Shown: positions 3,791 through 49,946 of the stretch, piece by piece
Layout of the letters: each line of letters opens with the position of its first letter
How positions within the stretch are numbered: position 1 is the first letter of the stretch
Virus record (IMG/VR): IMGVR_UViG_3300017917_002466
Span: 124,001-188,000 of that record
Length of the DNA: 64,000 nucleotides
Direction: 5' to 3' (one strand)
Program-made: the position numbers and the translations under genes
Notes under the pieces: model-generated
Told to the model about the DNA's origin: nothing
The model's input: the letters and a program-made list of their open reading frames with translations, nothing else
Databases searched by the model: none

Positions 3791-4074
3791 GTTAGGCTCT
3801 TTCAATTGTGATAAGGTGGAAGCCATTAAAGACTTTGTGGTTCTTTCGGACTATGAAGGAAGCCCAATCCAACTCAATCCGCTGACCAAGGAAAGCACCG
3901 AAGTCGACTCGGCCAAAGTGAGGAAGAACAAAGGAAGTACCAGCCGAAGCCCTTGTCAGCTTCTTCTGGACGATTGAGGAGAGAATGTGATTGAGAACTT
4001 TGAACATATCGTTCCCCTTTCTGTACATCTAATATAATACAAAGGGGCCTGAATGTCAAGCCCCTTTTTGTATT

Positions 4075-4186
4075 TGGTGGCAGCGGCTGGATTCGAACCA
4101 GCATCGGGACGACCACTACTTATCTAGAATGTTCGTGACCGTCAGGCACACCATTGGCCCTTTGTGTATTTGTCCTACACGCTGCC
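4075..4186 (-). ncRNA. tRNA-like RNA (112 nt) with non-canonical anticodon region
   Basis: Acceptor stem GGCAGCG/CGCTGCC + A + CCA; T-arm GCTGG-TTCGAAT-CCAGC; central part too long and branched for a standard tRNA. Confidence 0.7.
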
Positions 4187-4206
4187 AGTAAGCTTGTTGA
4201 AGTTGA

Positions 4207-4509
4207 TTACACAAACTCGTAGCACTCGACAGCCGGACCGTTCCGCATATTCTCACTGACAATCACAGCCTGAACCATCGGCCACTCGGCACGGTCGATG
4301 TTGCGCCACTTGGCGATGTAGGAAACATTCTTGGCGCAAGCTATCGGCTCGTCACAACACATTGAGCCAATCTTGTAGCCGTTCTTGTCCATGAACTTCT
4401 CAGCCTGACTCTCAGCCTCAAAGTCCTCGGTGGACTCAAAGCGGGCGATCATCACAGCCTTGCGACCAGTTTCCCTTGCGATCGTCTCAGCGGTTGACTT
4501 GTTGCTCAT
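4207..4509 (-). CDS. hypothetical protein
   Basis: ORF MSNKSTAE with AAAGG RBS and own promoter. Confidence 0.65.
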   Translation of the reverse strand: MSNKSTAETIARETGRKAVMIARFESTEDFEAESQAEKFMDKNGYKIGSMCCDEPIACAKNVSYIAKWRNIDRAEWPMVQAVIVSENMRNGPAVECYEFV

Positions 4510-4823
4510 TGATTGTTTTCCTTTCTGTACATTCAATATACATCAAGCGAGTCGGTTTGTCAAGCTCTATTTTTGGTATTTCCGTACAGACATAATACTT
4601 GATACTCTTCACCATCAGAGTAAGGAATCTTTTTATTTGACATTTCAGCAAAAACAAACCGAACACCTTGATTTCGAAGGTCTTGAGCAGCTGCTTGAAG
4701 GTCAGAAATTAACTCTTCTACCGAACCACCTACGCTTATTTCAACTTCTACTCTTCGCATATTCCCTCCTTTTGTACATATAATATACAACAAATGAGCT
4801 TGAAAGTCAAACTCTTTTTATAT

Positions 4824-5591
4824 TTAGTAACATCTAAGCAAGCGCTTTGTGTGCAGGGCCCCGGCGGGAAGGTGGCGTCCGTCAAGTGAATACGTCTCCA
4901 GTCGACCGGGGCGCACCGCGACCGGCGGTCTGTGGCGGCTGTCCAATACACCCGCCCTGGGCACCAGAGAAAACAATCCGGAAAGCGTACTGATACTGTG
5001 ATTGTCGTAGTTGCTCAACTGGATATAACAGGCGTCCGACTGCGGGAGATCGGTGCCCACGGTCCAGAGCCATGAACTGCCGCTGAGCCGTGCGGTCGTC
5101 AACGTCTGGAAATTGATACCGCCGTCGGTTGACAGTTCGACGCGCAGGTCGGCCTGAAGACCGATCTGCCAGGTAATCTCATACGTCGAACCCAATTCGA
5201 TATTCTCTCCGCCGGTAGGCGTCAGGACGAGAAATGGAACATCCTCCTGCACCGTTACCGATATACTGTCAACGACGGTAAACTCTCCGTCGTAGGCAGA
5301 CAACTGGAACACGTACGCTCCCGCCATCGAGAACACAACCAGAGACGACTTCGCGCCCGGAGCCCGGATATCGGCTCCGCCGGCAGGCCCGTCAACCTGC
5401 GTCCACTGATATTGCAGTTGTGCATTGAGCAGGCTGTCGTCCGTCGCAGTGGCGAAAAACCGGAAGGTCTGTCCAAGTCGAAACGTCGTATCGTGTCCGG
5501 CATTGACAACCGGCGGATTATTCTGAACGCCCCACACCCCGGACGACAGCATCAAAATACCCAGAATTGCGGAAAAACCGAGCCGAGTCAT
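4824..5591 (-). CDS. secreted PKD/Ig-like domain protein of bacterial type, possibly C-terminally truncated
   Basis: Signal peptide; NNPPVVNAGHD, YQWTQVDGP and GAYVFQLSAYDG PKD/REJ-like motifs; second Ig-like domain (PTGGE, LSTDGGINF); YSLDGR tail; GC-rich. Confidence 0.75.
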   Translation of the reverse strand: MTRLGFSAILGILMLSSGVWGVQNNPPVVNAGHDTTFRLGQTFRFFATATDDSLLNAQLQYQWTQVDGPAGGADIRAPGAKSSLVVFSMAGAYVFQLSAYDGEFTVVDSISVTVQEDVPFLVLTPTGGENIELGSTYEITWQIGLQADLRVELSTDGGINFQTLTTARLSGSSWLWTVGTDLPQSDACYIQLSNYDNHSISTLSGLFSLVPRAGVLDSRHRPPVAVRPGRLETYSLDGRHLPAGALHTKRLLRCY

Positions 5592-5621
5592 AAAACATCA
5601 CCCCCATTTAATTCACATTGC

Positions 5622-5718
5622 CTACAACGTTTACGCAATGGGCGAAGCGCACCGTCTACAAAAAAGTTTATCTTCCTCCTTACCACAAACGGTGCATTTT
5701 GCCCTTGCGCTGTTGTGT
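5622..5718 (-). repeat. attC-like site
   Basis: Minus strand ACACAAC agcgcaagggc...gcaccgt...acggtgc...gcccattgcgtaaac GTTGTAG. Confidence 0.8.
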
Positions 5719-5734
5719 GATGTGTTGCGAGTAC

Positions 5735-5881
5735 CTAAATGTTAATAGCTATTGTTGTACAAATAAACCCTGATAATAATCCAATCCCACTACCAGCAGA
5801 TGGAGGTAAATTAAAAAGAATGCTTATGCCACAACTAATGAAACATCCAATAACAAAACCAATAATCACACGACACAACAT
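5735..5881 (-). CDS. cassette-borne 48 aa membrane peptide
   Basis: AGGAGG RBS; MLCRVIIGFVIGCFISCGISILF..., two hydrophobic segments. Confidence 0.6.
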   Translation of the reverse strand: MLCRVIIGFVIGCFISCGISILFNLPPSAGSGIGLLSGFICTTIAINI

Positions 5882-5924
5882 AATACCTCCTTTAAAAATT
5901 TAAGAGCAACATTTTGCACAACGT

Positions 5925-6170
5925 TTACGCAACGGTAGATGTGTTGCGCTTACTTGGTTCACAAATATCATCTACAAACTTAAACTGACAATCGGGATAC
6001 CACTTGCACTTCAAACATTGGCGCAACATTTCTACCTTGCGGTGTTGTGTGTTGCGGAGGAAGGCTACCTCAGATTCCAGAGCAATTATGCGCTTTTGAC
6101 TACGCACACAAACCAACATTTGAAAAAAACCGATTGCCACCAAAACGATGATTGAAATTGAGTTAAGCAT
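5925..6170 (-). CDS. cassette ORF (TM, coiled coil, Cys-rich tail encoded in attC)
   Basis: AGGAG RBS; reads through attC 5917-6050. Confidence 0.65.
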   Translation of the reverse strand: MLNSISIIVLVAIGFFQMLVCVRSQKRIIALESEVAFLRNTQHRKVEMLRQCLKCKWYPDCQFKFVDDICEPSKRNTSTVA

Positions 6171-6252
6171 AATTGCTCCTATAATGATAAAAAGCCGACC
6201 GTAGTTTCACACAACGGTTTGCCGTGTGTTGTGTGATGTTTAACCGCGCCTC

Positions 6253-6399
6253 CTAATTTTCTTTCGGCGCAGGCACTTGAGTAAACTTACCATCAAGAGT
6301 AACCTCGAAATAATTACCACAACAATCCCGAACCAATTCTATATCACGATAACCGCCTACAGGCTCGTAACCAAGTTTGCGAAGAATATAGCAGTTCAT
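6253..6399 (-). CDS. cassette-borne 48 aa protein
   Basis: AAGGAG RBS; MNCYILRKLGYEP... Confidence 0.55.
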   Translation of the reverse strand: MNCYILRKLGYEPVGGYRDIELVRDCCGNYFEVTLDGKFTQVPAPKEN

Positions 6400-6455
6400 T
6401 TTTGCTCCTTGCGCCGAACTATTAATTCAAAGCGCGGTTAAATTTCGCACAACGT

Positions 6456-6761
6456 TCAGCGCACAGCCGATGCGGTACGCCCCGTGCTACGCTTCCCACG
6501 TTTCGGCTTGCGCTTGTTGGCCGATGTGCCTGCCGACTCAAATTTTACCAGCGGGCGACCCGGCGTAGTTACGAGAAGTCGAAGAAAGTAAATCGCTGCA
6601 TCGTTAGCCACTTTGTGCAGCTTTTTATAAGAATCGCGGCAGCCTTGTTGCCTGAACGTGTCAACAAAAGCCATTGCGATATTCGACTGCCACGCATATC
6701 GATACCCTTCGTCTTTTTTCAGGGCTGCCGCCACCATTTTGAATGCCTGTTGAAACTTCAT
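6456..6761 (-). CDS. cassette ORF, paralog of 33538..33795
   Basis: MKFQQAFK..AL..D.G...A.Q.NIAMA shared with 33538..33795; basic tail encoded by attC. Confidence 0.7.
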   Translation of the reverse strand: MKFQQAFKMVAAALKKDEGYRYAWQSNIAMAFVDTFRQQGCRDSYKKLHKVANDAAIYFLRLLVTTPGRPLVKFESAGTSANKRKPKRGKRSTGRTASAVR

Positions 6762-6818
6762 TTTGCTCCTTTCGCCCGCCTACAAGATGGTTCGGCAGGC
6801 ATTTTGGCCAACGTGTTG

Positions 6819-7061
6819 CTAAACGGCTGATAGTTGCCGAATAGCCTGCAAAGATTGTCGAGCCAACACATACTGACCGTTGGACGTATACTCATCGTAA
6901 TCACGCAAACGTGAGGCAATTTCAGCCTTTAGTTGTTGTAGGCTGTTTGAGGAGGCTTCCATCAATTTTGCAGCACAAACAAGTGCCGCCTCTGCACTTC
7001 CAATATCTCCAACACTTAAAGCCAATTGAGCATTATGAATGTGTGATAGTATGTGCTGCAT
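6819..7061 (-). CDS. cassette ORF
   Basis: GGAG RBS; reads through attC. Confidence 0.6.
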   Translation of the reverse strand: MQHILSHIHNAQLALSVGDIGSAEAALVCAAKLMEASSNSLQQLKAEIASRLRDYDEYTSNGQYVLARQSLQAIRQLSAV

Positions 7062-7350
7062 ATAACTCCAATGAAAAGTTTATTTCCACCAACGTTGACA
7101 AATGCTGAAGTGCCCGCCTATATAACCTCTACCTTAATGTCAGCGGGCATTTGGGTCGAGGCATCCGAGCCAGCATTTGTTTGTTGTGTGCTGTGACGAC
7201 CGGCTACCTTGATTTTCTGTGCGGCGACCTTACGCAACTTATTGGCAACGACTTCCGCAACAGGATCGGGGCCGATGACTTCGATATTCATATGATTCCT
7301 TTCGCCGCACCTATTTATAGAAAAGCCGGGCGGCATGGCATCACAACGTT

Positions 7351-7617
7351 TCAGGCACTCGCCTGTTGTTTTTCTGCGACTCTATATTGACAAGACTCTG
7401 CCACGCAATACCCACGATTGACATTTAATGGGCACTTATGTTCCGATCCGAGACAGCAGAAAAATTGCAGGCTGCCTGTGTTGTATGAAGGTTTTGTTGA
7501 CTCCACCAGTGCTGCTTTTATGCGAAGCCACGCAAGATACTGGAGTCGCGACATACCGATATCACCCCAAGCCGAATCAACACTTTCTATATCTTCTTGT
7601 AGCATAAAAGCCTCCAA
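7351..7617 (-). CDS. first cassette ORF of array 1 (start may be 7605)
   Basis: Directly follows attI-like site; Cys-rich tail encoded in attC. Confidence 0.6.
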   Translation of the reverse strand: MEAFMLQEDIESVDSAWGDIGMSRLQYLAWLRIKAALVESTKPSYNTGSLQFFCCLGSEHKCPLNVNRGYCVAESCQYRVAEKQQASA

Positions 7618-7640
7618 TACGGTTCAACAAAACTTTTGTA

Positions 7641-7680
7641 CAACTAGTTAAATGATGTCATTCCCTTGTCTAACTCTTTG
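7641..7680 (-). other. attI-like recombination site, copy 1
   Basis: 40 bp identical to 33852-33891; ends at the GTT of the first cassette. Confidence 0.8.
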
Positions 7681-7697
7681 TTTTCTCCTATACATTT

Positions 7698-7726
7698 AAT
7701 ATACAACAGGAAACCGTTCTTGTCAA
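7698..7726 (-). promoter_or_regulatory. promoter facing cassette array 1 (Pc-like position)
   Basis: TTGACA-N17-TATATT immediately upstream of the attI-like site. Confidence 0.8.
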
Positions 7727-7991
7727 GCCCTTTCTTACATCACCGAAACAAACAGATTCACGTCAGGGGCTTCCATTGCCTTCTTCAAAAATTCAACATC
7801 GGCATCTGTAATGGGCCGAAGGAACTTCTTCTGATTCTCAACCATATCGCTCTTGGCGATTACCAAGGCACGATAGTTGTCATACTCTCGCTTCGTCCAA
7901 CCACCAGTGAAATTCATGTTGCCTCCCTTTCTTACTATCAATATACACTATGGAAGAAGGATTGTCAAGCCCCAAAGTTGAAGTCCTTTTA

Positions 7992-8074
7992 TTTAATCGT
8001 TTAAAAATCCACCGTAGGCTTTATCCTTGGCTTACTAAACCCTCGGCTTTATCCTGTCTTCTTAAGCGATTAAA
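7992..8074. repeat. paired-palindrome module TTTAANCGNTTAAA x2
   Basis: Same layout at 12067-12150; inverted half copy at 10640-10661. Confidence 0.7.
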
Positions 8075-8134
8075 TAAGGGTAAAAAAAGAAGGGGAAACC
8101 TTTGCTTCCCCCAGTTAGATCACATCTTCGGTTC

Positions 8135-8320
8135 TTAGGCAGCCAAACTTGCTACCCAGTTGTAACCAGCAATCAAGTAAGGCACTATTGTATTATAGAC
8201 CTGAATAGCCAGACTCCATACCTGAGGAACGAGAGCCACGACGAAGGTTACCAGAGTCACAACCACCATCACCATAAAACTGAACACTGTCACCAGAATC
8301 CCACCGATTGTTGCGAACAT
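8135..8320 (-). CDS. small hydrophobic membrane protein
   Basis: MFATIGGILVTVFSF...; followed by hairpin plus U-tract at about 8082-8112. Confidence 0.6.
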   Translation of the reverse strand: MFATIGGILVTVFSFMVMVVVTLVTFVVALVPQVWSLAIQVYNTIVPYLIAGYNWVASLAA

Positions 8321-8649
8321 CTTCCTTCTCCTTTGATTGTTTGTGTCTTCCCTACCGACACATATAATATAAGCTCTGCAAACCAATTTGTCAAGCCCTA
8401 AAAAAGAAAACCGGGACCGATAGAGAAGGGGAGAGGGAGGAATCGATCCCGGTTTCTTTGAAGCAACTTTAAAGATGGTAGCTTTTTGATTTGTCTTTTA
8501 GCCGCATCAACTCGGCGCAGTCAACTACCGAAACTGCTTGCAATCTTAATATACATTACTCGGGTCGTTTTGTCAAGTCCTTTTAATAAAAAAATAAAAG
8601 CTATCGAGAACCGATAGCTTTTCAAGCAAGGAAGGATAAAATGAGGAAA

Positions 8650-9117
8650 TTACTGAGCAGATGCCATATCGGCTTTTGCTGAGGCTTCTGCATTTGCATC
8701 AACCGGGATTTCATCATTGACGATCACCTCAGGAATATCTATAATATTTTCCGGATGAACGACTTTCTGCTTACGGCTTTTATTTACCCGACTTGAATTG
8801 GACTTACTTTCTTTGGTCACGATTGCAATACCATTTTTCTTGAGCATTGCAACGATTTTTGAAACGCTCATACCAGTCTTTTTCGCAATTTCACTGGCTG
8901 TACGTTTTCCTTTACGACCAAGAGCAAGAACACGATATTTCGCTCTTCGACCAGCAACTTTGTCAGACCCTTTTGTATTTGCATACACAGTCTGATAAGT
9001 CATCCCGGTCATCTCAGCAGCTTCTGCAAGCGTCTTACCAGCAGCAACCAAAGCCTTCGCTGCGGCTGTTCGAGACTTGTACTCTACACCTTCAATCTTC
9101 ACACTCTGCTTAGCCAT
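8650..9117 (-). CDS. putative HTH DNA-binding protein
   Basis: TLAEAAEMTGMTYQTVY and TASEIAKKTGMSVSKI HTH-like motifs; AGGAGG RBS before MAKQS. Confidence 0.6.
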   Translation of the reverse strand: MAKQSVKIEGVEYKSRTAAAKALVAAGKTLAEAAEMTGMTYQTVYANTKGSDKVAGRRAKYRVLALGRKGKRTASEIAKKTGMSVSKIVAMLKKNGIAIVTKESKSNSSRVNKSRKQKVVHPENIIDIPEVIVNDEIPVDANAEASAKADMASAQ

Positions 9118-24659: not shown

Positions 24660-25343
24660 ATGATTCTTTCTAAAACTGTTCAAGTTAAAATTAGCCGAAG
24701 AAATATTAAACATTATTTGTCTCTTGGTTATGTTATTCCAAAACATACTGATATTTATAATCGCCTTTGTAATCAAATAGGGATTCTAATTGAAGTATCT
24801 ATTGGACATTTACTCAAAGGAAGTAAAGTAAAAGTTCTTTGTAAATGTGACGAATGTGGAAAAGAAAATTTAACTTATTACAACGAATCTCTTAAATTCA
24901 AATATATTTGTAAAAATTGTGCTGCTAACCAACCTAAAAGATTAGAAAAGTTAAAAAATGCTATGACTGGTAAAAAACATTCCGAAGAAACTAAAAAGAA
25001 AATGAGTGAACATAATTGGGCAAAGAATCATACTGGAAAACTACATCCTTGTTACAATTCTAATCTTACTTTTGAAGACCGATATCTAGGTAGAAATAGA
25101 AATGTACAGCCAGAAAATTATCAATGGAAAAAGAAAGTTAAAGAAAGAGATAATCATATTTGCCAAAAATGTGGCTCAAAAGAAAATCTATGCGTTCATC
25201 ATCTTAACAACTATAAATCATTTGAAAACGAAAGGTATGACATTAAAAATGGAATTACCTTATGTGTTGGATGTCATAAGGAATTCCATAAAAGATATGG
25301 TCGTTTAACTACCAAAGAGCAAATAAAGGATTTTATAGGGTAA
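24660..25343 (+). CDS. HNH homing endonuclease with NUMOD3-like motif
   Basis: KHSEETKKKMSE; RDNHICQKCG...VHH...NGITLCVGCHKEFH. Confidence 0.85.
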   Translation: MILSKTVQVKISRRNIKHYLSLGYVIPKHTDIYNRLCNQIGILIEVSIGHLLKGSKVKVLCKCDECGKENLTYYNESLKFKYICKNCAANQPKRLEKLKNAMTGKKHSEETKKKMSEHNWAKNHTGKLHPCYNSNLTFEDRYLGRNRNVQPENYQWKKKVKERDNHICQKCGSKENLCVHHLNNYKSFENERYDIKNGITLCVGCHKEFHKRYGRLTTKEQIKDFIG

Positions 25344-25632: not shown

Positions 25633-26481
25633 CTAACGGGCATTTCGCACAACAGTGTCCTGCGCGGGGCTTCTTAGCGCATGGATGCGCTCTTCTGCTA
25701 TCCGGCAGTATTTCTCTTCCTTCTCAATTCCGATGTAATTCCGGCCAGTATTAATACAAGCGATTGCAGTAGTACCGGAACCAATGAACGGGTCTAAAAT
25801 TGTATCACCACAAAAAGAATAATAAGAAATCGCTTTTGTAGCCAACTCTAATGGGAACGGAGCTGGATGTCTATTACGCTCCGGGTTGATTTTCCATACA
25901 TTTGTTCTTTCGTAACCATCCAGCACTTTGGATTTTTTTATTATCTCTTGTGAATGAGAACGAATTGATTTGTCCAGTAAGCACCCCGGCTTTGAAAACA
26001 CCAGTATATATTCTGTAATATTAAATGTTTTGTACGCAACTGGTCTACGATGGTGCGAAAATTTGATTGCTCGACTTGATGCACCATCTGGCTTTACCCA
26101 TATAATGTCGTCTAAGAATGTCCATTTTTTTGAAAGCATAGAACAAACATCAAACGGTATTGGTATTCGTTTTGATTCTGTGCTTCTTTTTTTCCTCGCT
26201 TCAATAACGCATGACAAGTTCAGCACAAATATTCCCGCCGGTTTTATCTTTGTATGTGCCGTATTAAAAACTGTGTCTAAAAAAGATAGATACGAGGCAT
26301 ACGATTCGTATTTTGAATAACACCTTGCATTATAATACGGCGGTGATGTTAAAATCATATCCACGCTCTCGTCTGGTATAGTCTGCATGACTTCGAGGCA
26401 GTCCCCGCATGTTACGGTATTTGTCTTCGGCGCAGGACGCGCCGTGTCTTGCCCCGCGCCTATAATTTCAGAATTTGCCAT
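25633..26481 (-). CDS. DNA methyltransferase (N4-C/N6-A, beta-type motif order), last unit of array 2
   Basis: GDCLE, ILTSPPY, HPAPFP, ILDPFIGSGTT, GIE; ATG 5 nt after GTTAGGT. Confidence 0.9.
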   Translation of the reverse strand: MANSEIIGAGQDTARPAPKTNTVTCGDCLEVMQTIPDESVDMILTSPPYYNARCYSKYESYASYLSFLDTVFNTAHTKIKPAGIFVLNLSCVIEARKKRSTESKRIPIPFDVCSMLSKKWTFLDDIIWVKPDGASSRAIKFSHHRRPVAYKTFNITEYILVFSKPGCLLDKSIRSHSQEIIKKSKVLDGYERTNVWKINPERNRHPAPFPLELATKAISYYSFCGDTILDPFIGSGTTAIACINTGRNYIGIEKEEKYCRIAEERIHALRSPAQDTVVRNAR

Positions 26482-26516
26482 ATTGCACCTAACGGTTCGG
26501 CAAACGTAAGCCGTGC

Positions 26517-26738
26517 CTACGAATGCGTGCGACAAGGATATTTTACGTGAACGCACTGACGGTCGTAATTCTCCACACAGCACGTTGTTTGGCATGGCTT
26601 GCTTTGCCTGTTGTTTGTCTGTTGAGCGAGTACAGCGGATTTCAGAGTTTGCCAATGCAACCGCCCCTTAGTTTGCAAGTGCTCCGATAACTCATCAAAC
26701 CATTGAACCGCATCAGATATTTCGTTACTCATTGGCAA
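26517..26738 (-). CDS. cassette ORF with attC-encoded Cys-rich tail
   Basis: One ORF per cassette; AGGAG RBS. Confidence 0.55.
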   Translation of the reverse strand: MPMSNEISDAVQWFDELSEHLQTKGRLHWQTLKSAVLAQQTNNRQSKPCQTTCCVENYDRQCVHVKYPCRTHS

Positions 26739-26780
26739 ACTCCTATCAGTAAATTTAAGAGCGAAATTGCAAACAACGTA

Positions 26781-27095
26781 TCACGCACCCGCCCGTTGTT
26801 TGTCCGTTATCCACTTACAGCACCGAGGGCACCAAGCATCTATACCGCTATATGGATACACTGGTGCCTTACCACATGTAGGACAAATTACGGGCTGCGT
26901 GTGTTGTGGGACCGTGGGCAATTCTACCGCAATCTCTGCGCGGCGATCTTTTACCCATTGCTCCATTTCGATTTGATCATTACTCAATACCACCAACGCA
27001 TCATTAGGGATTTTCCCACCATGACGAAAAGGTGCCGTGACCTTGTTGACTCGGCAAAGGAACATCTCAAGCCTGTGTATGTCTTCGACGCGCAT
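26781..27095 (-). CDS. cassette ORF with attC-encoded zinc ribbon
   Basis: CPTCGK...CPRC lies inside attC 26771-26909. Confidence 0.6.
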   Translation of the reverse strand: MRVEDIHRLEMFLCRVNKVTAPFRHGGKIPNDALVVLSNDQIEMEQWVKDRRAEIAVELPTVPQHTQPVICPTCGKAPVYPYSGIDAWCPRCCKWITDKQRAGA

Positions 27096-27721
27096 AATAA
27101 TTCCTTTTGAATTGCCCATGTACCACAACGTTTAGCGCACGGGTGATAGTTTGCCCGTGGCTCGACAAAGCCCACACTTTACCATACCAGTACCAGGATC
27201 GTCGGATAAATACTCGCCACTACCCATACACGTAGGGCAAATTTTACCCTGCGCTTGTTGGTTGATGCGGAGGGAAGCCACCTCAGCCTCCAGCGTGGCG
27301 ATAGCCCGTTCAAGAGACAAAAACCGATTCATAACAAATGATGGATCAGAGAAATCAATTTCGTTTACCACGCCACACCTCCATGTATAAAAAGCTGACC
27401 GAAGTTTCAACCAACGTCTGCCCTATGCTGACGTTTCTGTTTCAGAAATGTGGGAGTCATCGACCGAACAGCATTGGGCTGTTGTTTGCTGTGCGCTCGC
27501 TTCCACAAAACCTGCGGTTTGCGGAGTATCGAGAGGGCACCAATTTGGTATTTCAAAAGTAACATTGATAACAGACCTACCGCCATATAGAGGATGGTTG
27601 CAAATAAATCCACTCTGACTGTAGCACAAGGGACATTCGTTACAGCAACTAATTTTGATTACACGCATGAGCAAACCGCCTATCTATTCTCAAAAGAGCG
27701 CATTGCAACCAACGGTATCGG

Positions 27722-27958
27722 CTACGCCTGAAGTTTGCCCGTACCGTGACAACGCCAACAGTCCTTACCATTGTTATAATTATTGGTAGAACCAGACCCA
27801 GCAGGGAAACAGTCAGGGCAAATTTTAGGCTGGCCGTGTTGGTGGATGTGACGCTTGCTTCCACCAATTTTGCGGCGGGTCTTAAACTGATCCTCGCCAT
27901 AGTGGCCGGTTATGTAATTATCAAGTTCCTGACTCATGCGCTTATCGTTGCCGAACAT
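27722..27958 (-). CDS. cassette ORF with DnaJ-like Cys-rich tail
   Basis: ICPDC..GSG...CWRCHGTGK; GGAGG RBS. Confidence 0.6.
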   Translation of the reverse strand: MFGNDKRMSQELDNYITGHYGEDQFKTRRKIGGSKRHIHQHGQPKICPDCFPAGSGSTNNYNNGKDCWRCHGTGKLQA

Positions 27959-28590
27959 ATTTCCTCCCGCCGCTTACCAGTTAAAAGCAAGCGGCATTTA
28001 CACCAAGTTTGGCGCATTCGCACGAAGTTACGCCGTCTTATCGCACCAACAAGTAGAACACTGCTTGTGAGCAACATCAAACGGGCATATATCCAAGCCC
28101 CATTTACAAGAAGGCGTAATTTTGTGCTGCGCCTGTTGGTGGATGTGCCGCGTTTCTTCCGCAATGTCAGGCTGGCAATCTTCCAGCATGATAGGGCAAG
28201 AACCGGCGTGATCCACTATTTCATCTTGAGTGCCAAAGAAGCCGCAATATTTACATTTGCCAGCCATATAATAAACCTTTCTTGAAACGCGGCATTTACA
28301 CCAACGTTTGCTCAACCGCACGATAGTTGTCGCAATCGATCTACCACTGCTGTAACATAAGACACATAAACCTTGTGCTCAACAAACTCTTTGTAAAGAC
28401 TATCGGCTATTGCGGCAATTTCGTGCTTGAGCTGTTGTACGTCTGTGGAAGGAGCGGCTTCCTCAGCTTTAAGTGCTCGCATCACGGCAGGGCAACGGTC
28501 TACGTTTATACCCATACCGCTACACGGCAAAATGAATGACTTGTTATCCACGCGAGCACCTCCTAAATCGTAAAGAGCGACTGGAATTGC

Positions 28591-28722
28591 GTACAACGGT
28601 TCAGCAACGTGCGCCGTGCCTACAGGGCTTCACGGCAATATGGACACCACACAAACCCAGTATGGGCCTTGCCAAGACGAAGCCACTCGTGAAATTGGCA
28701 TGGCGTACTTGCCGTGTTGTGC
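28591..28722 (-). repeat. attC-like site, near-identical to 29438-29570
   Basis: About 105 bp internal identity with 2 visible substitutions; encodes NTASTPCQ[FY]HEWLRLGK.HTGFVWCPYCREAL. Confidence 0.85.
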
Positions 28723-28844
28723 GATGAATTTGTTGACTCCCTAATGTAAGCGCGAATTGCTTCTAACGCGGTAAAATCTTTTGAATATTTACACATTCTC
28801 TCTACTTGCAAAACGGCTTCGTGTATATCCATTCGCGCCTCCAA
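28620..28844 (-). CDS. cassette ORF (body family shared with 31415..31663)
   Basis: ALE.IRA...ESTNSSHN shared; tail shared with 29468 cassette. Confidence 0.65.
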   Translation of the reverse strand: MEARMDIHEAVLQVERMCKYSKDFTALEAIRAYIRESTNSSHNTASTPCQFHEWLRLGKAHTGFVWCPYCREAL

Positions 28845-28895
28845 TATGGTTCAACAAACTTTTGCACAACGGTTCGGCAAACGGGCGAAGTTGGT

Positions 28896-29063
28896 TTACC
28901 TCGACACGGAGGGCTGTTCTACGCCAATTTCGCCCTTTGCCTGTTGTGCGATGTTGTTTTTAATTACCTTAATTTCAGCGGCGATTTCTCGTAACCGAAG
29001 ATTATTAGCTACAACAAAGCACCACAACGATAAATAAGCCAGAAAGACAAAAAACCATTTCAT
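28896..29063 (-). CDS. cassette-borne 55 aa membrane protein
   Basis: MKWFFVFLAYLSLWCFVV... Confidence 0.55.
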   Translation of the reverse strand: MKWFFVFLAYLSLWCFVVANNLRLREIAAEIKVIKNNIAQQAKGEIGVEQPSVSR

Positions 29064-29109
29064 AATCGCCGCCTATAAATCAAAGATTAAAAACCATTTC
29101 GCCTAACGT

Positions 29110-29406
29110 CTACCGCATCGCACGAAGTTGCCGCGCCCAAACCCACAACCTACGATAAACCCCTGACGGTAGATTATTGTTATTGTCTACAAAGGCTTCC
29201 ATTTCTGCGGCAATTTTGTGCTGCGGTTGTTGCACGGGGCGCTTCGCCCGAACCGTTCGGCCCGTTTCCAAATTATCCAGCGCGGTGCGGACTGCTATTG
29301 CCCCGCTGTGGCCGAGAGAATAATTGACAACGGCAACCGCTTTGCCGTTACGACATACCTCAAACGCATAGCCAGTATCTTCTATCTCATATTTGGCACC
29401 GCGCAT
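29110..29406 (-). CDS. cassette ORF
   Basis: AGGA RBS; tail ..WARQLRA shared with 30599 cassette. Confidence 0.6.
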   Translation of the reverse strand: MRGAKYEIEDTGYAFEVCRNGKAVAVVNYSLGHSGAIAVRTALDNLETGRTVRAKRPVQQPQHKIAAEMEAFVDNNNNLPSGVYRRLWVWARQLRAMR

Positions 29407-29437
29407 ATTAACATCCTATCTTTAAGGGCCGAATGGC

Positions 29438-29570
29438 GTGCAACGTTCTCGGCAATGTACGCCGTGCCTACAGGGCTTCACGGCAATATGGACACCACAC
29501 AAACCCAGTATGGTCCTTGCCAAGACGAAGCCACTCGTGATATTGGCATGGCGTACTTGCCGTGTTAGGC
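29438..29570 (-). repeat. attC-like site, near-identical to 28591-28722
   Basis: GCCTAAC...GTTGCAC. Confidence 0.85.
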
Positions 29571-29701
29571 GATGTAGAAAGCGACTCCTTAACGTCCTCA
29601 AATTTGACAAATTCACCGTCGTCGCACTCCTCCATCCGAGCATGCGTGCCATACATATCGCTCGTGACCTTATAATCGTACCGTGTCAAATTTACATCCA
29701 T
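29468..29701 (-). CDS. cassette ORF (NLTRY...G..VKF.D.KE body family)
   Basis: Body related to 32217..32474 and 31696..31962. Confidence 0.6.
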   Translation of the reverse strand: MDVNLTRYDYKVTSDMYGTHARMEECDDGEFVKFEDVKESLSTSPNTASTPCQYHEWLRLGKDHTGFVWCPYCREAL

Positions 29702-30598
29702 ATATCGCTCTCGCTTTCTATTTCGCATAACGTCTGCCACACGGTTGATCGTTACGGCCTACCTTGCCAATCACCAGATTCACGTTCAGGAACATCATAT
29801 CGCCGTTTAGATAAATCTCCATAATATGAATAGGCCGTAATGTCAACCTGTGGCTGTTGTACGTCTGTGGAAGGAGCGGATTCTTTAGTTAATGCGGTGC
29901 AGCCATGACCGACACCCTGAACACCTTGCCACTCCCACCGAGCTTGTATATAGTGACGACAATCTTTGAACATTTGCACCGCCTTATAGATCGTTTAGAG
30001 CGACTGGAATAGCGTACAACGTGTGCCAAAGTATGAAGGTGTGAAACAATTTGCGAAGCGAACATACTTTGGCTGTTGTGTGTTGGTTTTCGCTCCACAA
30101 TATTAAAAAGCAATTTGGCGATTGTAACGAGGCCAACTCAACCACCCTCGTATCCCATCGGGCGTCCCCTTTGGTGGTCTACATAGCCGTGGACGGCTTA
30201 GCCAAATTGCCTATAAATTCAAAGAGCGAAAACTTACACACAACGTATACGCTATTGTGAAGTAACTATGTTATTTAGGCGCTCCTCTAACTGTGAAATA
30301 AGCGACAATGCCTGTGGATACGACTCCATTGCTGACGGAACTGAATCCCGTAGAAACTTGAGCGCCGCCACAATAGCGTTGTTGTGCGAAGGTTTTAACG
30401 CCTCCTCACAAAACATTTTTATGCGACCCCACGCCAGTTGTTCAGACGAAGACCCTTTTGCATTAACAAGTGCGCTAACAGATGATAGTTCATTTTCAAG
30501 CATAAAAACTCCTAAATAAAAAGCGTTAAAACTTTTGCACAACGGGATCAGGCATTGCCCGACAGTTTGCGCGGTGCTTCACAAGCGATACAAACGCT

Positions 30599-30895
30599 TC
30601 ACAAAGCGCGAAGTTGCCGCGCCCATTTACTTAACTGCTCTGCACTTGGTACGCCACCGATATTTGCTATGCGCACACCATCCTCAAGCTCAGTGGCAAT
30701 TTGGGCGATAGCCGCGCTTTGTGTGTTGGTTGATGTGGAAGGAATGCCCACCTTATTTTTCTTTCGGCGGGTAATCTTTCTCCACCACGAATGAACAACG
30801 GAACAGATAATAGCAACCAATCCTATTGCCAACGCTACGCCAAGGAACACCAGCCCAAACACATCATGAAACGTCCATACGAAAATAGAACCCAT
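30599..30895 (-). CDS. cassette ORF, membrane protein
   Basis: AGGAG RBS; long hydrophobic segment. Confidence 0.6.
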   Translation of the reverse strand: MGSIFVWTFHDVFGLVFLGVALAIGLVAIICSVVHSWWRKITRRKKNKVGIPSTSTNTQSAAIAQIATELEDGVRIANIGGVPSAEQLSKWARQLRAL

Positions 30896-30954
30896 TTTTT
30901 TCTCCTTACCCGCCGAACTATTAATTCAAAAGCGGGATTTATTTTGCACAACGG

Positions 30955-31131
30955 TCAGCGCACAGCCGATGCGGTACGCTTACCATTTTTGCTACCCCGT
31001 TTCGGCTTGCGCTTGTTGTGTGCTGTTCGGCGCGACTCTAATCGCTCCCAGGCGGCCAGCTCCGCATCACCACGGGCCTCCGCCGCACCCATCACAGCAT
31101 CAAAATCATCAGGACCATAATCGTTTTTCAT
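30955..31131 (-). CDS. cassette ORF of 58 aa; basic tail shared with 6456..6761
   Basis: HNKRKPKRGSKNGKRTASAVR vs ANKRKPKRGKRSTGRTASAVR. Confidence 0.6.
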   Translation of the reverse strand: MKNDYGPDDFDAVMGAAEARGDAELAAWERLESRRTAHNKRKPKRGSKNGKRTASAVR

Positions 31132-31414
31132 TTGGCCGCCTTTACAATAACGCTCTCACGCCGAATGGCATCACAACGTTCACCGCACGCCGGATGCGGT
31201 ACTCCGTTTACGGCTGCGGGTGTTGTGCGAAGTGCGGCCCGCTTCCGCAAGTATTGGCGCGACTTCGCTACGGTGCGCCCACTGACCTTCCTTGTCAAAC
31301 ACAAACCTTGCAATTACTTTTCCACAGCAAATCTCAGTTTTCAATGAATACCACTGCAGTTTTTTTCGCGCCATTATAACCTCCAAAAGGGCCGCATTTT
31401 GCACAACGTCTGCG

Positions 31415-31663
31415 CTACTGGTGCTGTGCGCATACTAAGCAGGCATGTTTTTTACACTTTCGACTAGTAATTACACCACAGTCGTAACCAGCTCCGATGT
31501 GCGCTTCGCATGGCACCATAGCGCTGTTGTGCGATGAATTTGTTGACTCCGCCAGTGCTGCGCGAATGGTTTCCAATGCACATTTACAATCTGGACACTG
31601 GTGTTGATCCACGACTATTTGAAAATGAGCCAAGGCTTTCTTAATTTCCATTCGCGCCTCCAA
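31415..31663 (-). CDS. cassette ORF
   Basis: 5' end near-identical to that of the 28620 cassette. Confidence 0.6.
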   Translation of the reverse strand: MEARMEIKKALAHFQIVVDQHQCPDCKCALETIRAALAESTNSSHNSAMVPCEAHIGAGYDCGVITSRKCKKHACLVCAQHQ

Positions 31664-31695
31664 TATGGTTCAGCAAATTTTTCGCACAACGTATG

Positions 31696-31962
31696 CTAAA
31701 CGGCTGATGCCTTGCGCTGGATAAAATAGTCGTGAACATCTGGATACCACACACATTTACGACATTTATATAAATCCTCGTAATCGCTACCATAGTACGT
31801 TTCACATTCCTTACAGCGCAAGGTTTCAGCCTTTAGCGGTTGGTTGCCTGTTTGTGAAAGCTCCTTAGTGTCGGCAAATTTTAAATATACTCCGTCACCA
31901 CCTTGATGTATGTCGCAATCACAATCGCAACTATTAAACACAAATGTTCTGAAATTTGCCAT
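31696..31962 (-). CDS. cassette ORF with zinc-binding tail
   Basis: AAGGAG RBS; CKEC...CRKC inside attC. Confidence 0.6.
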   Translation of the reverse strand: MANFRTFVFNSCDCDCDIHQGGDGVYLKFADTKELSQTGNQPLKAETLRCKECETYYGSDYEDLYKCRKCVWYPDVHDYFIQRKASAV

Positions 31963-32216
31963 ATAATATCGCTCCTTTCACAAATTGCAACCAACGGTTG
32001 CCAAAGTATGAAGTTTACGTTTCGTAAATTTGCGAAGCGAACATACTTTGGCTGTTGTGTGTTGGTTTTCGCTTCACAATAATGTAAGGCGCGGGGCTGC
32101 ATAGGCTGAGTAGTGACCACCGCAGCATATATCTCCACCGAAAGTACGGTGAACCCTCAATTGTCACCGCGCCATATAAATTCCAAAGAGCGAAAACTTT
32201 CACACAACGGTTCGCA

Positions 32217-32474
32217 CTACTGCTGTTCGTGCCAATCGGTTCGTTTGCCAGTAAACCTACTGCACGCATGGCACGTGGGGCTGACACAACCACCTATGTT
32301 ACGTTTGCAAGATTGGCATGACAGCATAGCGCTGTTGTGCGATGAATTTAGAAGCTCCTTAATGTCGTCAAATTTAACCCAAGCCCCCTCATCGGATGCA
32401 ACCATTTGATGAAAATTATCCATAGTTTTAGTACGGTTAAACCACTCTAAATTATAACGGGTTAAATTTGCCAT
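32217..32474 (-). CDS. cassette ORF with zinc-binding tail
   Basis: 5' UTR identical to the 31696 cassette, different attC. Confidence 0.6.
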   Translation of the reverse strand: MANLTRYNLEWFNRTKTMDNFHQMVASDEGAWVKFDDIKELLNSSHNSAMLSCQSCKRNIGGCVSPTCHACSRFTGKRTDWHEQQ

Positions 32475-32868
32475 ATAATATCGCTCCTTTCACAAATTGC
32501 AACCAACGTTTACGCAACGGGTGAAGTCGCCACAACTTTTAGATTATGACAATACCCTTGCTTTAATGTACAATGATCCGATAAACACTTTAAACTACAC
32601 TCGATTTCACCCTTGCGTTGTTGGTTGTCTGTAAAATTTTCTACCTTAGATGCAAGAGCGGCACACCATACGAGATGGGTATACTGCTCCTTATCTAACG
32701 TAGATTTACAACCAATACTATCAAACCATTCTCTACAAGTGCCGCTCATATAAACTCCAAAGAAAATTTTATTGCAACCAACGTTTGACAAATGGTGAAG
32801 TCGTGTACTCACGATTTAGGCTTTTCGTTACCATTTGTTTGTTGTAAGATGTTTATGCCACTTCCTTA

Positions 32869-33165
32869 TTATCCGTTGGCGCATCTTTGTTTTTTGATAT
32901 AGTCTAAAAGTGTAACCTGTTCTTTTTCTGGTAACTGTTCAATCACTTTTTTATTGAAAAAATATTCATCCGTAAAACCACCAACAAAATCTAACCATTT
33001 TCCTGAAATCTTTGGTAATGGTAACTCGGTGCCCCGATAAGATGCAGACATAAATATCTCTGCTGGTACGCCGTTTAATTTCCGGTAAAGTGTTCCCCCA
33101 CCACTTTTCTGATGTTCCTCTGGATACGGTGGGTTCCAAACGCCTGTGAATTTTAGTTTTTGCAT
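32869..33165 (-). CDS. cassette ORF ending before its attC
   Basis: AGGAG RBS; 98 aa. Confidence 0.65.
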   Translation of the reverse strand: MQKLKFTGVWNPPYPEEHQKSGGGTLYRKLNGVPAEIFMSASYRGTELPLPKISGKWLDFVGGFTDEYFFNKKVIEQLPEKEQVTLLDYIKKQRCANG

Positions 33166-33496
33166 TTTTTCTCCTGCGCCAACATCTGAATATCAGAGTG
33201 GCATAAATTTCTTACAACGTTCACCGCACAGCCGATGAATTGCGCTGCCAGTTACAAGAAAGATTTTTTACACATACATCACCAAACCCTGCTTGATAAC
33301 TACACATTCCACTATATGCACAAAGCAATTTTTCGGCTTGCGGTTGTTGTGGGATGTGGAGCGCAGGTTCCTTAGTGTCCTGCGCGGCACGCTTCGCCCA
33401 AAAATCAATCCATTCATCACGAGTAATAGCTGGTTTAGATGGCATAATGTGACTTTCTATGAGCCGCGCCTATCATATAGACCTGCGCGGAATTTA

Positions 33497-33560
33497 CCAC
33501 AACGTCTGCGCAACTGCGCGTAGTTGGGCCTTGACAATTACGACGCTTGCGCTGTTGGTG
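33497..33560 (-). repeat. attC-like site of first cassette of array 2
   Basis: CACCAAC agcgcaa...ttgcgcagac GTTGTGG; R'' matches the cassette start GTTGGTG. Confidence 0.85.
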
Positions 33561-33795
33561 GATGTGCCTGCCGACTCCGCTTGCTCTGCGGGCGAACCGG
33601 CGTCAACAACAGCGCGAGGAAATGATCGGCGGCGCGATTGCCTATAGTGTGCCGTTTGGCCGATGAATCACGGCTACCCTCCCAACGAGCACAGTCGTAA
33701 TACGCCATGGCGATGTTGGCCTGATAGGCACGGTACAGCCCCTTGTCGCGCCGTAACGCCCTTGTGAATACCTTGAACGCCTCTTGAAACTCCAC
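33538..33795 (-). CDS. first cassette ORF of array 2, paralog of 6456..6761
   Basis: AGGAGG RBS; GTG start. Confidence 0.7.
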   Translation of the reverse strand: MEFQEAFKVFTRALRRDKGLYRAYQANIAMAYYDCARWEGSRDSSAKRHTIGNRAADHFLALLLTPVRPQSKRSRQAHPPTAQAS

Positions 33796-33851
33796 AGGCG
33801 CCTCCTTATTGTTCGCCCGCCTACAATCGCGTTCTCGGCAGGCATTTACAC

Positions 33852-33891
33852 CAACTAGTTAAATGATGTCATTCCCTTGTCTAACTCTTTG
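33852..33891 (-). other. attI-like recombination site, copy 2
   Basis: CAAAGAGTTAGACAAGGGAATGACATCATTTAACTAGTTG, identical to 7641-7680. Confidence 0.8.
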
Positions 33892-34095
33892 ATTTTCATA
33901 AAATTTTTTAAACTTATTGCTCAATTTATCTAATGGATAACCGTCTTGTATTAAAGCCCTTATTACAGCATACCGAATATATTTAGAACGAGTAATTTTT
34001 AGCTTTTCTCCTTGATGCAAACAACCAGTTGCTAAAACTGGTTCTAAATATATCTTATAGTCACTTCTTATCTTATCAGACCATTTTGCTTTCAT
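33859..34095 (-). CDS. small basic protein, possible ribbon-helix-helix DNA-binding protein, overlapping the attI-like site
   Basis: ITRSKYIRYAV motif; promoter TTGACA-N17-TATATT at 34102-34130. Confidence 0.5.
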   Translation of the reverse strand: MKAKWSDKIRSDYKIYLEPVLATGCLHQGEKLKITRSKYIRYAVIRALIQDGYPLDKLSNKFKKFYENQRVRQGNDII

Positions 34096-42565: not shown

Positions 42566-43456
42566 TCAATTACAAGCTATTATAGAAGGTTTATTAGCCA
42601 TTTCTTCTCCGACTCTCTTGTATTGGTCAAGAAATTGAACTCCGTCAAGCTTATCAATAGCCTTTGGAATAGCAATGTCATAGTAGCTCATTGAAATCTT
42701 TTTCTTTGAAGAATTACACATTGCCTGTAATCCATAGACTTGTTCTTGACGAACTTGTTCTCTGGCTAGTCCACCATCATCAATTTCAAGGAAAGAAAGA
42801 ATCTGACGAACAAATTTATACTTTTTAGCTTTATTGAATAAAATATTTTCATCAGAAAATCCACAACCAATAATATCAAAATGCCAATTTTCATTTGGCC
42901 AAAGAATGAAAGCATCAACAAGACCATAAGCAATAGGAATATTGGCTACTCCCATTCCACCATCCATCCATACGGATTTATTTTGTTCGTCAATCAATGT
43001 TCCGAAATAGAAAGGAGCAGCAAAAGACTTACATGTCGAAGTAACAAGATATTCTTGTCCATCCTTTTGTTCCCAAGACTTAAAGAAGTGATTTCTCTTG
43101 TCACAAAGATTAACAGAAGTTATTTGAACTTTTGTCAAACAATCAGCCATTTTTATCATTCCAATTTCTTTGACAAAAATTTCAATGAAGTGTTTTCTAT
43201 TATACATTGGAATTGGTGGAAGCCATTGTCTTTCAAATATCTTCTTGACCATACTTGGATAAATAGCTTCAAGATAATCCATTGTAATCTTTCCAGAAGC
43301 TATCATTGCGGCATTGATAGCCCCAACAGAGCTTCCTACAATCAAGTCATAATATTTGGAAAGAGGACCAACTTCAGCTTCTTTCTTTTTCAAAACTTGG
43401 GCTTGTGCGTAGCCTTTTACACCACCACCGCTTAGAATCATTATTCGTTTAGACAT
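42566..43456 (-). CDS. patatin-like phospholipase
   Basis: SGGGVKG, GSSVG, DGG motifs. Confidence 0.9.
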   Translation of the reverse strand: MSKRIMILSGGGVKGYAQAQVLKKKEAEVGPLSKYYDLIVGSSVGAINAAMIASGKITMDYLEAIYPSMVKKIFERQWLPPIPMYNRKHFIEIFVKEIGMIKMADCLTKVQITSVNLCDKRNHFFKSWEQKDGQEYLVTSTCKSFAAPFYFGTLIDEQNKSVWMDGGMGVANIPIAYGLVDAFILWPNENWHFDIIGCGFSDENILFNKAKKYKFVRQILSFLEIDDGGLAREQVRQEQVYGLQAMCNSSKKKISMSYYDIAIPKAIDKLDGVQFLDQYKRVGEEMANKPSIIACN

Positions 43457-43785
43457 TTTTTAATTCCTCTTTATCTTGATTAAAGTTTTCACATTTTTCT
43501 TTTAATAAATGTCCGCATTTTTCCCATTCAAAACAATTTTTACAACAAGAATTATTCCATTTTTCTCTTAAAGATGATGCACTTAGTTCAATCATTTCTA
43601 AAACAAATTTTTCACCTGGGTCTTTTCCTTTATTAATTCCATCAAAATATTTTGCATCATTCAAATATTTAATTTCTACTTTTATAAATCTTTGGTCTTT
43701 TTGAGACATTTTTGCTCCTTTTCATATAAATACTATATGAAGAAAAAATTAGGATAAACCCTAATCAAAAAGGAGTCAATTTTAA

Positions 43786-43899: not shown

Positions 43900-43935
43900 A
43901 AATATTTTAATAAGTAAAATATTCTAAAGGCTTTA

Positions 43936-45240: not shown

Positions 45241-45279
45241 TTAGAATATTCTTTCTATCAAATATAATATATAAATAAC

Positions 45280-45370: not shown

Positions 45371-45382
45371 TCTACTAAACGA

Positions 45383-49945: not shown

Positions 49946-49946
49946 A

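Follow-up and report, generated by a model that had tools for sequence, protein, structure and literature searches.

Among the closest known systems to the locus studied here are clusters of attC sites lacking an integron integrase (CALINs) in phage genomes, reported by Qi et al. 2023 (PMC9892861). Those CALINs include cases in virulent phages whose sites are recombined by IntI1. They were found with the standard attC models in 10,705 isolate genomes, with a definition that required only two or more sites, and the phage cases so far are small clusters. We analyzed a 64-kb window (positions 124,001 to 188,000) of the 254-kb contig IMGVR_UViG_3300017917_002466, a virulent-type jumbo phage from a pond. 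As in the published cases, this phage carries co-oriented attC-type sites with single ORFs and no integrase nearby, a DNA methyltransferase among the cargo, and insertion next to GTT-containing sequence. In contrast, we found 7 + 25 sites and 34 cassettes in a single phage, a site family with mirrored bulges and coding interiors, a duplicated attI-like sequence, and the same cassette family in at least six other viral contigs.

Sedentary chromosomal integron arrays, for example Vibrio superintegrons with homogeneous VCR sites, similarly have long arrays of small, mostly orphan, promoterless cassettes, with homogeneous site types, some long sites (about 130 nt), ORFs that may end inside the site, and one upstream promoter driving the array. 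Here, however, there is no intI next to attI, the replicon is a virulent-type phage, bulges lie on the other arm, the spacer is one-sided, terminal complementarity is extended, and whole protein modules are encoded in the site interior. With class-1 mobile integrons (attC structure described in PMC5027507), our sites share the AAC/GTT cores, the G|TT junction, the 6-bp spacing of unpaired features, the more stable G.T-rich bottom strand, and the layout of the attI simple site plus an upstream GTTRRRY repeat. They differ in that position 3 of RYYYAAC is usually A, and in bulge geometry, as detailed below. Finally, the promoter/stem-loop mobile regulatory cassettes of T4-type phages appear to be repeated intergenic units of early regions associated with gene shuffling, and the backbone of this phage follows that one-promoter-per-gene style. 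The arrays themselves contain no promoter motif, and their sites carry integron cores and cassette-specific R-box complementarity.

Organization of the cassette arrays

The original prediction described about eight cassettes with a common attC grammar at 4824-7644, in a GC-richer block without internal early promoters, and all of its checkable statements hold. The block (array 1, genes on the minus strand) contains eight co-oriented, promoterless cassettes, seven of which end in an attC-like hairpin, while the eighth keeps only a hairpin remnant. The features of array 1, and those of the second array (array 2) to which it is related, are as follows, with hairpins given in plus-strand coordinates:

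7697..7726 (-), phage early promoter (TTGACAAG-N-TGTTGTATATTA), the only promoter motif upstream of array 1 and the presumed Pc equivalent
7645..7684 (-), attI-like leader, reading in gene sense GTTAGAC - 14 nt - ATTTAAC - TA - G|TTG, which duplicates the 3' end of ORF 33859-34095 preceding array 2
7347..7644 (-), cassette 1 (C1_7), ORF 7351-7605 (84 aa) with a Cys-rich tail encoded inside its hairpin 7341-7486 (50.2 bits); 5'UTR shared with array-2 cassettes i and s
7093..7346 (-), cassette 2 (C1_6), ORF 7118-7291 (57 aa), hairpin 7087-7189 (30.1 bits)
6812..7092 (-), cassette 3 (C1_5), ORF 6819-7061 (80 aa), hairpin 6806-6941 (48.8 bits), the same type as 31684-31845
6453..6811 (-), cassette 4 (C1_4), ORF 6456-6761 (101 aa), combining the N-module of a widespread ~70-aa family with a basic tail encoded by the short hairpin 6447-6522
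6215..6452 (-), cassette 5 (C1_3), ORF 6253-6399 (48 aa), flanked by a 44-nt inverted repeat, truncated mini-hairpin 6209-6234 (18.9 bits)
5922..6214 (-), cassette 6 (C1_2), ORF 5925-6170 (81 aa) with a membrane helix plus a Cys-rich tail inside hairpin 5916-6050 (82.2 bits)
5628..5921 (-), cassette 7 (C1_1), ORF 5735-5881 (48 aa, hydrophobic), hairpin 5622-5718 (46.9 bits)
4824..5627 (-), terminal cassette (C1_0), ORF 4824-5591 (255 aa) with a signal peptide plus PKD and Ig-like domains, GC 0.58; only an R''/L'' remnant (about 4840-4853) is left of its site, without a covariance model hit
4781..4810 (-), the next phage early promoter, marking the distal end of array 1
25633..33855 (-), array 2, with 25 hairpins (26487-33560) and 26 cassettes, the last an N6/N4 DNA methyltransferase with a truncated site
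33856..34095 (-), ORF 33859-34095 (78 aa), whose last 33 nt plus stop codon form the attI-like sequence in front of array 2

Each cassette consists of a short 5'UTR with its own Shine-Dalgarno sequence, one small ORF, and an imperfect hairpin site with CAAC/GTTG cores. The early promoter motif TTGACA-N-TATATTA recurs every 300-500 nt on the minus strand from 1 to 18.3 kb, but is absent between 4781-4810 and 7697-7726, as well as in array 2, and the T4-type arrangement of an early promoter plus stem-loop in each intergenic unit is therefore not what we observed. We infer that array 1 is read as one operon from the promoter at 7697-7726 through the attI-like leader. GC content was higher in the block (0.484) than in the flanks (0.39-0.42).

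Structure and covariation of the attC-like sites

A covariance model built from 31 sites found the hairpins only in array 1 and in array 2, always on the plus strand, and nothing else in the 64-kb window. The mini-site 6209-6234, which was not used for training, scored E=7.5e-4. In 1.03 Mb of other phage DNA, the model gave one hit, itself next to a related methylase cassette. The methylase exists elsewhere as a cassette with its own site. AA of the core was invariant in 31/31 sites, and C/G were conserved in at least 90% of sites. The R helix was 97% paired, L-box pairs showed compensatory changes, and 80 cells changed on both sides against 37.8 in shuffles, with 0/500 shuffles as high.

The variable bases of each cassette's R'' match its own first bases rather than the adjacent partner, the hallmark of integron cassettes. 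As originally predicted, the 6456 gene starts GTTGGCC (reverse complement of 6806-6812) and its R'' is GGCCAAC (reverse complement of 6516-6522), while the 5925 gene starts GTTGTGT and its R'' is ACACAAC. Across the ORF, the four variable R-box bases matched at 22/28 positions in array 1 (shuffled mean 15.7, p=0.004) and 89/100 in array 2 (shuffled mean 52.3, p<1e-5), against 15/28 and 57/100 for the local partner. These statistics rule out a chance pattern. An assembly artifact is likewise excluded, given that array 1 was a single 3153-nt unitig at even depth in an independent assembly of the run and that related arrays occurred in contigs drawn from at least ten metagenome datasets other than that of the window, even though several related arrays end at contig ends.

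The plus strand was more stable in 28/32 sites, and a G.T wobble lay next to the R box in 29/31 sites, as in attC bottom strands. However, the bulge geometry was the mirror image of class-1 attC sites: one-sided bulges were 54 on the 5' arm vs 4 on the 3' arm in the window, and 10 vs 1 in L047, a siphovirus contig encoding DnaB, RusA and DUF5131, while six class-1 sites folded the same way gave 1 vs 10. By the rule of PMC5027507, this would favor the opposite strand. The R and L boxes nearly abut, the spacer is 3-4 nt on one arm and 0-1 nt on the other, the R stem extends 20-40 nt, and ORFs read through the hairpin, whose interior often encodes Cys-rich mini-domains. Our model did not hit the class-1 qacF, aadB, VIM, IMP-1 or aac(6') sites, and Rfam searched at gathering score gave no match in the whole window. 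The site family may escape standard attC models.

These differences raise the possibility that the sites are substrates of a dedicated, non-IntI phage enzyme, such as a different tyrosine recombinase, a Xer-type recombinase, or a single-strand HUH enzyme, which would make the system an integron analogue rather than an integron relative. The presence of break points at both cores and the detection of the site family only in viral or metagenome contigs, and not in 41 bacterial genome loci matching the 19-mer of one attC arm, are consistent with this reading. On the other hand, the cores are the integron AAC/GTT, box periodicity is 6 bp as in attC, the junction is attI1-like, and no Y1/HUH, serine or tyrosine recombinase domain was found in 131 kb of the 254-kb contig. 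By inspection of the aligned junctions, no 11-6-11 dif-like site was visible, as only a 4-5 bp core was constant and the flanking arms were hairpin stems that covary. We therefore consider this alternative unlikely.

Shared material between arrays and occurrence in other phages

The inference in the original prediction that both arrays draw on one cassette pool is supported, as the two share material at several levels. Both begin after the same 44-nt upstream junction (7641-7684 vs 33852-33895, 97.7% identical), with RYYYAAC-TA-G|TT and an upstream GTTRRRY spaced as in attI1. This layout parallels attI1 (GTTACGC - 15 nt - CTAAAAC - AAA - G|TTAGGC), whose 59-mer was validated at 100% identity in at least 5000 plasmids. 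The arrays share 5'UTR families that begin exactly at the cassette boundary, and the predicted resemblances are real: 7610-7644 matched 28837-28870 at 91% and 31656-31690 at 83%, and 6771-6812 matched 33812-33855 at 80%. They also share an attC type (6447-6522 vs 30946-31021, 84%) and protein modules (with C1 and C2 denoting cassettes of arrays 1 and 2): the C1_4 N-part resembled C2_z at 51% over 73 aa, the C1_4 tail C2_q at 62%, the C1_2 tail C2_t, and C1_7 both C2_o and C2_s. Two qualifications apply, namely that the sites are not canonical attC sites in every defining feature (bulge arm and spacer), and that the shared units are often modules smaller than, or straddling, a cassette, not whole cassettes.

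Related arrays occurred in at least six other viral contigs with terminase-, DnaB- and jumbo-type backbones (L047, L170 with a gpA terminase, L169, L171, L173 and L141) and in six metagenome contigs. Homology between cassettes starts exactly at position 1 or ends at the cassette end, and six copies of one site type from five contexts were conserved only from AAC of R'' to CGTTG of R'. The two genes upstream of the arrays in the window and in L047 were not similar.

Alternatively, the hairpins could be repeated intergenic elements with an RNA or transcription role (terminators, processing or translational signals), with genes shuffled by homologous recombination between these repeats, as may be the case for the promoter/stem-loop cassettes of T4-type phages. 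Consistent with this, homology blocks (3' arm + R' + 5'UTR) travel together and cross the supposed crossover R', and the phage backbone itself is built from repeated regulatory units. However, the wobble pairs and lower folding energy favor the strand antisense to the mRNA, the variable R-box bases covary across the ORF, the sites are read in all three frames, near-identical sites sit in backbones with no other similarity and with GC from 0.32 to 0.58, and the array/backbone junctions fall exactly at G|TT. This explanation thus seems doubtful.

Recombination and cargo

Array 1 is most likely an integron-type gene cassette array that fits the definition of a CALIN, with a new, phage-borne attC family recombined in trans. 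On this reading, cassettes are gained, lost and reshuffled by site-specific recombination at G|TTG of the hairpin sites. The enzyme is inferred to be, most likely, an integron-integrase-like tyrosine recombinase supplied by the host or by an unsampled part of the phage genome, and the folded plus strand would play the part of the attC bottom strand. No integrase or other recombinase was found among window ORFs, in contig 85.1-215.7 kb, or in about 24 kb of a 48-kb phage, and the genes next to both junctions were small phage ORFs with no recombinase domain, so that this is not a complete integron. Similarly, no Y1 HUH transposase domain, as expected for IS200/IS605-type or REP/RAYT hairpin elements, was found among the ORFs scanned or in the precomputed Pfam lists. 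Also against this reading, 15 of 36 homology blocks cross the supposed crossover R', break points also cluster at R'', and contigs of the source sample showed no alternative joints, although contigs hide rare variants.

Given the bulge geometry, we also considered a crossover at R'' (right arm). We do not favor it because the attI-like junction carries only the R' remainder, the spacer length fits cleavage on the plus strand, and the wobble pairs favor that strand, but it is not excluded. More speculatively, the system could be a phage-specific counterpart of the integron that circulates among unrelated phages, with its own site family and an as yet unseen recombinase. Both cores would then serve as crossover points, and the N-terminal module (5'UTR + ORF body) and the C-terminal module encoded inside the hairpin (zinc-ribbon or basic tails) would be exchanged independently, resulting in combinatorial diversification of small early proteins, a phage-side mirror of bacterial integrons that stockpile anti-phage defenses. 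We regard this only as a tentative possibility.

The cargo is accessory, comprising small orphan proteins, many with hairpin-encoded zinc-ribbon-like tails, plus one secreted PKD protein and, in array 2, an orphan DNA methylase, and plausibly serves host takeover or counter-defense. While integrons are regarded as bacterial devices, these results suggest that phages could maintain their own exchangeable library of accessory genes. If confirmed, the arrays would also represent a large unexplored pool of small proteins, a natural example of recombination sites that double as coding sequence, and a natural 'inverted' site on which rules of attC strand choice can be tested.

A blastn search of 4000-9000 against 50,697 phage records gave no match, and a tRNA scan of the window found none. 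None of the 41 bacterial genome loci sharing a 19-mer arm was attC-like, and the match in L004 lay in a coding region. A word-indexed homology search with the PKD protein found only itself, Pfam and PHROGs searches of array-1 ORFs gave no family, and the Atlas look-alikes were uninformative.

Genomic context and organization of the cassette block

The viral contig IMGVR_UViG_3300017917_002466, obtained from a pond metagenome, is 253,664 bp long, and window position 1 corresponds to about contig position 124,001. A DNA-level search with window positions 4000–9000 found no relative among 50,697 deposited phage genomes. The contig carries 35 tRNA genes just outside the window, in a block that covers most amino acids (contig 87.4–95.7 kb; positions 2265–10533 of contig segment L087), while no tRNA is called inside the window, although 4066–4100 (minus strand) looks like the 3′ half of a tRNA. 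The first 18 kb of the window are a chain of small minus-strand genes, nearly every one of which has its own promoter of the form TTGACAAA-N-TGnTGTATATTA. About 30 copies of this strong extended −10 promoter (TTGACAAA-N10-TGnTGTATATTA) are present on the minus strand between 1 and 18300.

Between 4810 and 7697 this promoter chain is interrupted by a block (array 1) with a GC content of 0.484, compared to 0.39–0.42 in the flanks, and with no promoter motif on the coding strand. The block contains eight minus-strand ORFs, each preceded by a Shine-Dalgarno sequence and separated by seven imperfect hairpins:

5622–5718, plus strand, hairpin
5916–6050, plus strand, hairpin
6209–6234, plus strand, hairpin (mini-site)
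6447–6522, plus strand, hairpin
6806–6941, plus strand, hairpin
7087–7189, plus strand, hairpin
7341–7486, plus strand, hairpin

On the plus strand, each hairpin reads xxxCAAC-G, followed by a 3–4 nt bulge, a 6-bp box, one extra C or T, further stem, a variable interior, the return stem, and T-GTTGxxx. The two examples given in the original prediction, a GTTGGCC start with R″ GGCCAAC for the 6456 gene and GTTGTGT with ACACAAC for the 5925 gene, are exact. A larger array (array 2; window 25633–33895) has 25 hairpin sites and 26 cassettes, and an HNH endonuclease with a NUMOD3 motif (24660–25343, plus strand) lies on the opposite strand just downstream of it. Further HNH and DUF723 genes occur elsewhere in the contig.

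Specificity and covariation of the hairpin sites

A covariance model built from 31 such sites in the window found only those sites, all on the plus strand, and nothing else in 64 kb. With filters off, it also found the mini-site 6209–6234, which had not been used for training (18.9 bits, E=7.5e-4), while the reverse strand of the same sites scored at most 10.8 bits. In 1.03 Mb of other phage DNA, the model gave one hit, which lies directly behind a related methylase gene. The stem pairs covary: 80 cells changed on both sides, compared to 37.8 in shuffles, with 0 of 500 shuffles as high, and sliding the partner destroyed the signal. An assembly artifact is excluded, as an independent assembly of the run holds array 1 as one 3153-nt unitig at even depth.

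The diagnostic property of integron cassettes is also present. The four variable bases of the right arm of one site match the left arm of the next site, across the ORF, at 22/28 positions in array 1 (p=0.004) and at 89/100 positions in array 2 (p<1e-5), while the site's own partner matches at only 15/28 and 57/100 positions, respectively. This is expected if cassettes circularize and re-insert by exchange within the GTT/AAC core.

Cassette anatomy

Cassettes are 213–436 nt long, mostly 285–300 nt, and three of their features go beyond the textbook cassette. First, the first 20–40 nt of a cassette are complementary to the 20–40 nt that end in its own R″, with a conserved two-base mismatch (mean score 11.2, compared to 3.3 ± 2.1 for non-self pairs; see also the inverted repeats I1 and I2). 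Second, most ORFs read through R″ and on through the hairpin, and in 19 of 29 sites the stop codon falls in the last 20 nt, often in the bulge next to R′. Third, the interiors of the long sites encode Cys-rich mini-domains, such as two CxxCxGxG repeats with weak DnaJ and Anti-TRAP hits and zinc-ribbon-like CxxC...CxxC patterns, while the short sites encode basic tails. In array 2, several cassettes encode DnaJ-type CxxCxGxG zinc-finger pairs inside the hairpin (27132–27371, 27722–27958). Given that the CAAC core is translated in all three frames (HN, QQ, TxxQ), the conserved motif is a DNA signal, not a peptide.

Ends of the arrays

Both arrays start after the same 44 nt (7641–7684 vs. 33852–33895, 97.7% identical). 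In array 2, this stretch is the 3′ end of an intact 78-aa ORF, while in array 1 only this stretch remains, fused to the promoter at 7697–7726, so array 1 was probably seeded from the array 2 locus. In gene sense, the junction reads GTTAGAC - 14 nt - ATTTAAC - TA - G|TTG, which has the same layout as attI1 (GTTACGC - 15 nt - CTAAAAC - AAA - G|TTAGGC), whose sequence we validated against at least 5000 plasmids.

At the far end, both arrays finish with a larger gene whose site is truncated, and no model hit follows either gene. In array 1 this gene encodes the PKD/Ig-like secreted protein (GC 0.58), and in array 2 an orphan N6/N4 DNA methyltransferase. Interestingly, a relative of the methylase exists in another viral contig (L141, IMGVR_UViG_3300031566_011348; positions 1–990) as a cassette with its own attC-like site (858–937), and homology to the window copy stops at 25654, just before a GTTG core. 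The two ends of this L141 cassette are 85–89% identical in DNA to the window methylase, but the middle is only about 39% identical in protein, indicating that the gene itself is a mosaic.

Shared cassette pool and related arrays in other phages

Arrays 1 and 2 draw on one cassette pool, as inferred in the original prediction: they share 5′UTR families that begin exactly at the cassette boundary, an attC type, and protein modules. Cassette C1_4 of array 1 is a mosaic, with an N-module resembling array 2 cassette z and a tail and site resembling array 2 cassette q. This N-module (ORF 6456–6761, N-terminal 65 residues) belongs to a widespread ~70-residue family with 475 representative clusters at E<=1e-3 and the motif WQANIAMAF..D..SRDS..H.IAN.AA..FL.LL, for which there is no Pfam or PHROG model. 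Only some members carry the cassette-type extension. Related arrays occur in the following contigs:

L047, a 48-kb siphovirus-like contig of GC about 0.58, with the array behind a DnaB-Gp157-RusA-DUF5131 module (seven model hits)
L170, a contig where the array lies next to a lambda-type large terminase
L169, L173, and L171, contigs of 168, 219, and 61 kb
L141, the viral contig carrying the methylase cassette
L057, L058, L062, L063, L067, L073, and L075, seven loci in six metagenome contigs

Six copies of one short site type from five contexts are conserved only from the AAC of R″ to the CGTTG of R′, and differ on both sides. One 19-mer arm occurs in 41 bacterial genome loci, but none of these is attC-like, and so far the family has been seen only in viral or unbinned DNA. 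Repeated hairpins acting at the RNA level, combined with homologous recombination, could in principle account for such shuffling. However, this seems unlikely to us, and less likely than a dedicated enzyme. Against it, the fold is favored on the strand antisense to the mRNA, the R-box bases covary across ORFs, and near-identical sites sit in backbones that share nothing else.

CALINs in virulent phages, with sites usable by IntI1, were reported in 2023 (PMC9892861). Our literature searches found no description of large arrays in jumbo phages, of mirrored attC geometry, or of sites with translated interiors.

Recombinase and comparison with canonical attC sites

The best-supported reading, which we hold with reasonable though not full confidence, is an integron-type array served in trans by an IntI-like recombinase and expressed from the upstream phage promoter. 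No tyrosine, serine, or HUH recombinase domain was found among the window ORFs, in contig positions 85.1–215.7 kb (based on precomputed Pfam annotations, with about 123 kb of the jumbo contig remaining unread), or in about 24 kb of the 48-kb phage. No further arrays lie in the 82 kb searched outside the window. The main alternative, a dedicated non-IntI enzyme acting on the same architecture, remains possible but is considerably less favored.

Six class-1 sites taken from annotated plasmids were folded in the same way as the phage sites. Both kinds show unpaired features at about base pairs 5–6, 11–12, and 17–18 from the base. In class-1 bottom strands, the one-sided bulges lie on the 3′ arm (10 vs. 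1) and the spacer is two-sided. In the phage sites, they lie on the 5′ arm, the arm that carries the crossover AAC (54 vs. 4, and 10 vs. 1 in L047), and the spacer is 3–4 nt on that arm and 0–1 nt on the other. Our model does not hit class-1 sites.

The position of the extrahelical bases steers the integrase to the bottom strand (PMC5027507), and by that rule alone the phage sites would be recombined on the gene-sense strand, at R″. However, four observations argue against this reading: the attI-like junction carries only the R′ remainder, the 5–6 nt between AA|C and the L box lie on the plus strand, G.T wobble pairs sit next to the R box in 29/31 sites, and the plus strand has lower folding energy in 28/32 sites. 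In an uncut self-comparison, break points clustered at both cores (8 at R′, 5 at R″), and 15 of 36 homology blocks ran across R′, for example 6399–6519 vs. 30896–31018. Therefore, either strand could be the one used, and possibly both cores.

Other genes of the contig

Outside the arrays, the window encodes a run of accessory enzymes (42566–52108): a patatin-like phospholipase, a VWA/metallopeptidase-like protein with a MoxR-type AAA partner (43936–46648), a 3′-5′ exoribonuclease, an R2K ATP-grasp, a Thg1-like guanylyltransferase, and an RlaP nucleotidyltransferase. Genes with Tad6 and ART-PolyVal Pfam hits lie beside a CCA-adding-enzyme-like gene at contig about 198–199 kb (positions 7393–8468 of contig segment L084), and may be counter-defense genes outside the arrays. 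Finally, an NAD+ salvage and synthesis cluster (window 55458–62675) comprises NAPRTase (56323–57489), a Nudix/NMNAT-like pair (59819–61004), NAD synthase (61345–62127), and an isochorismatase/nicotinamidase-like gene (62145–62675).
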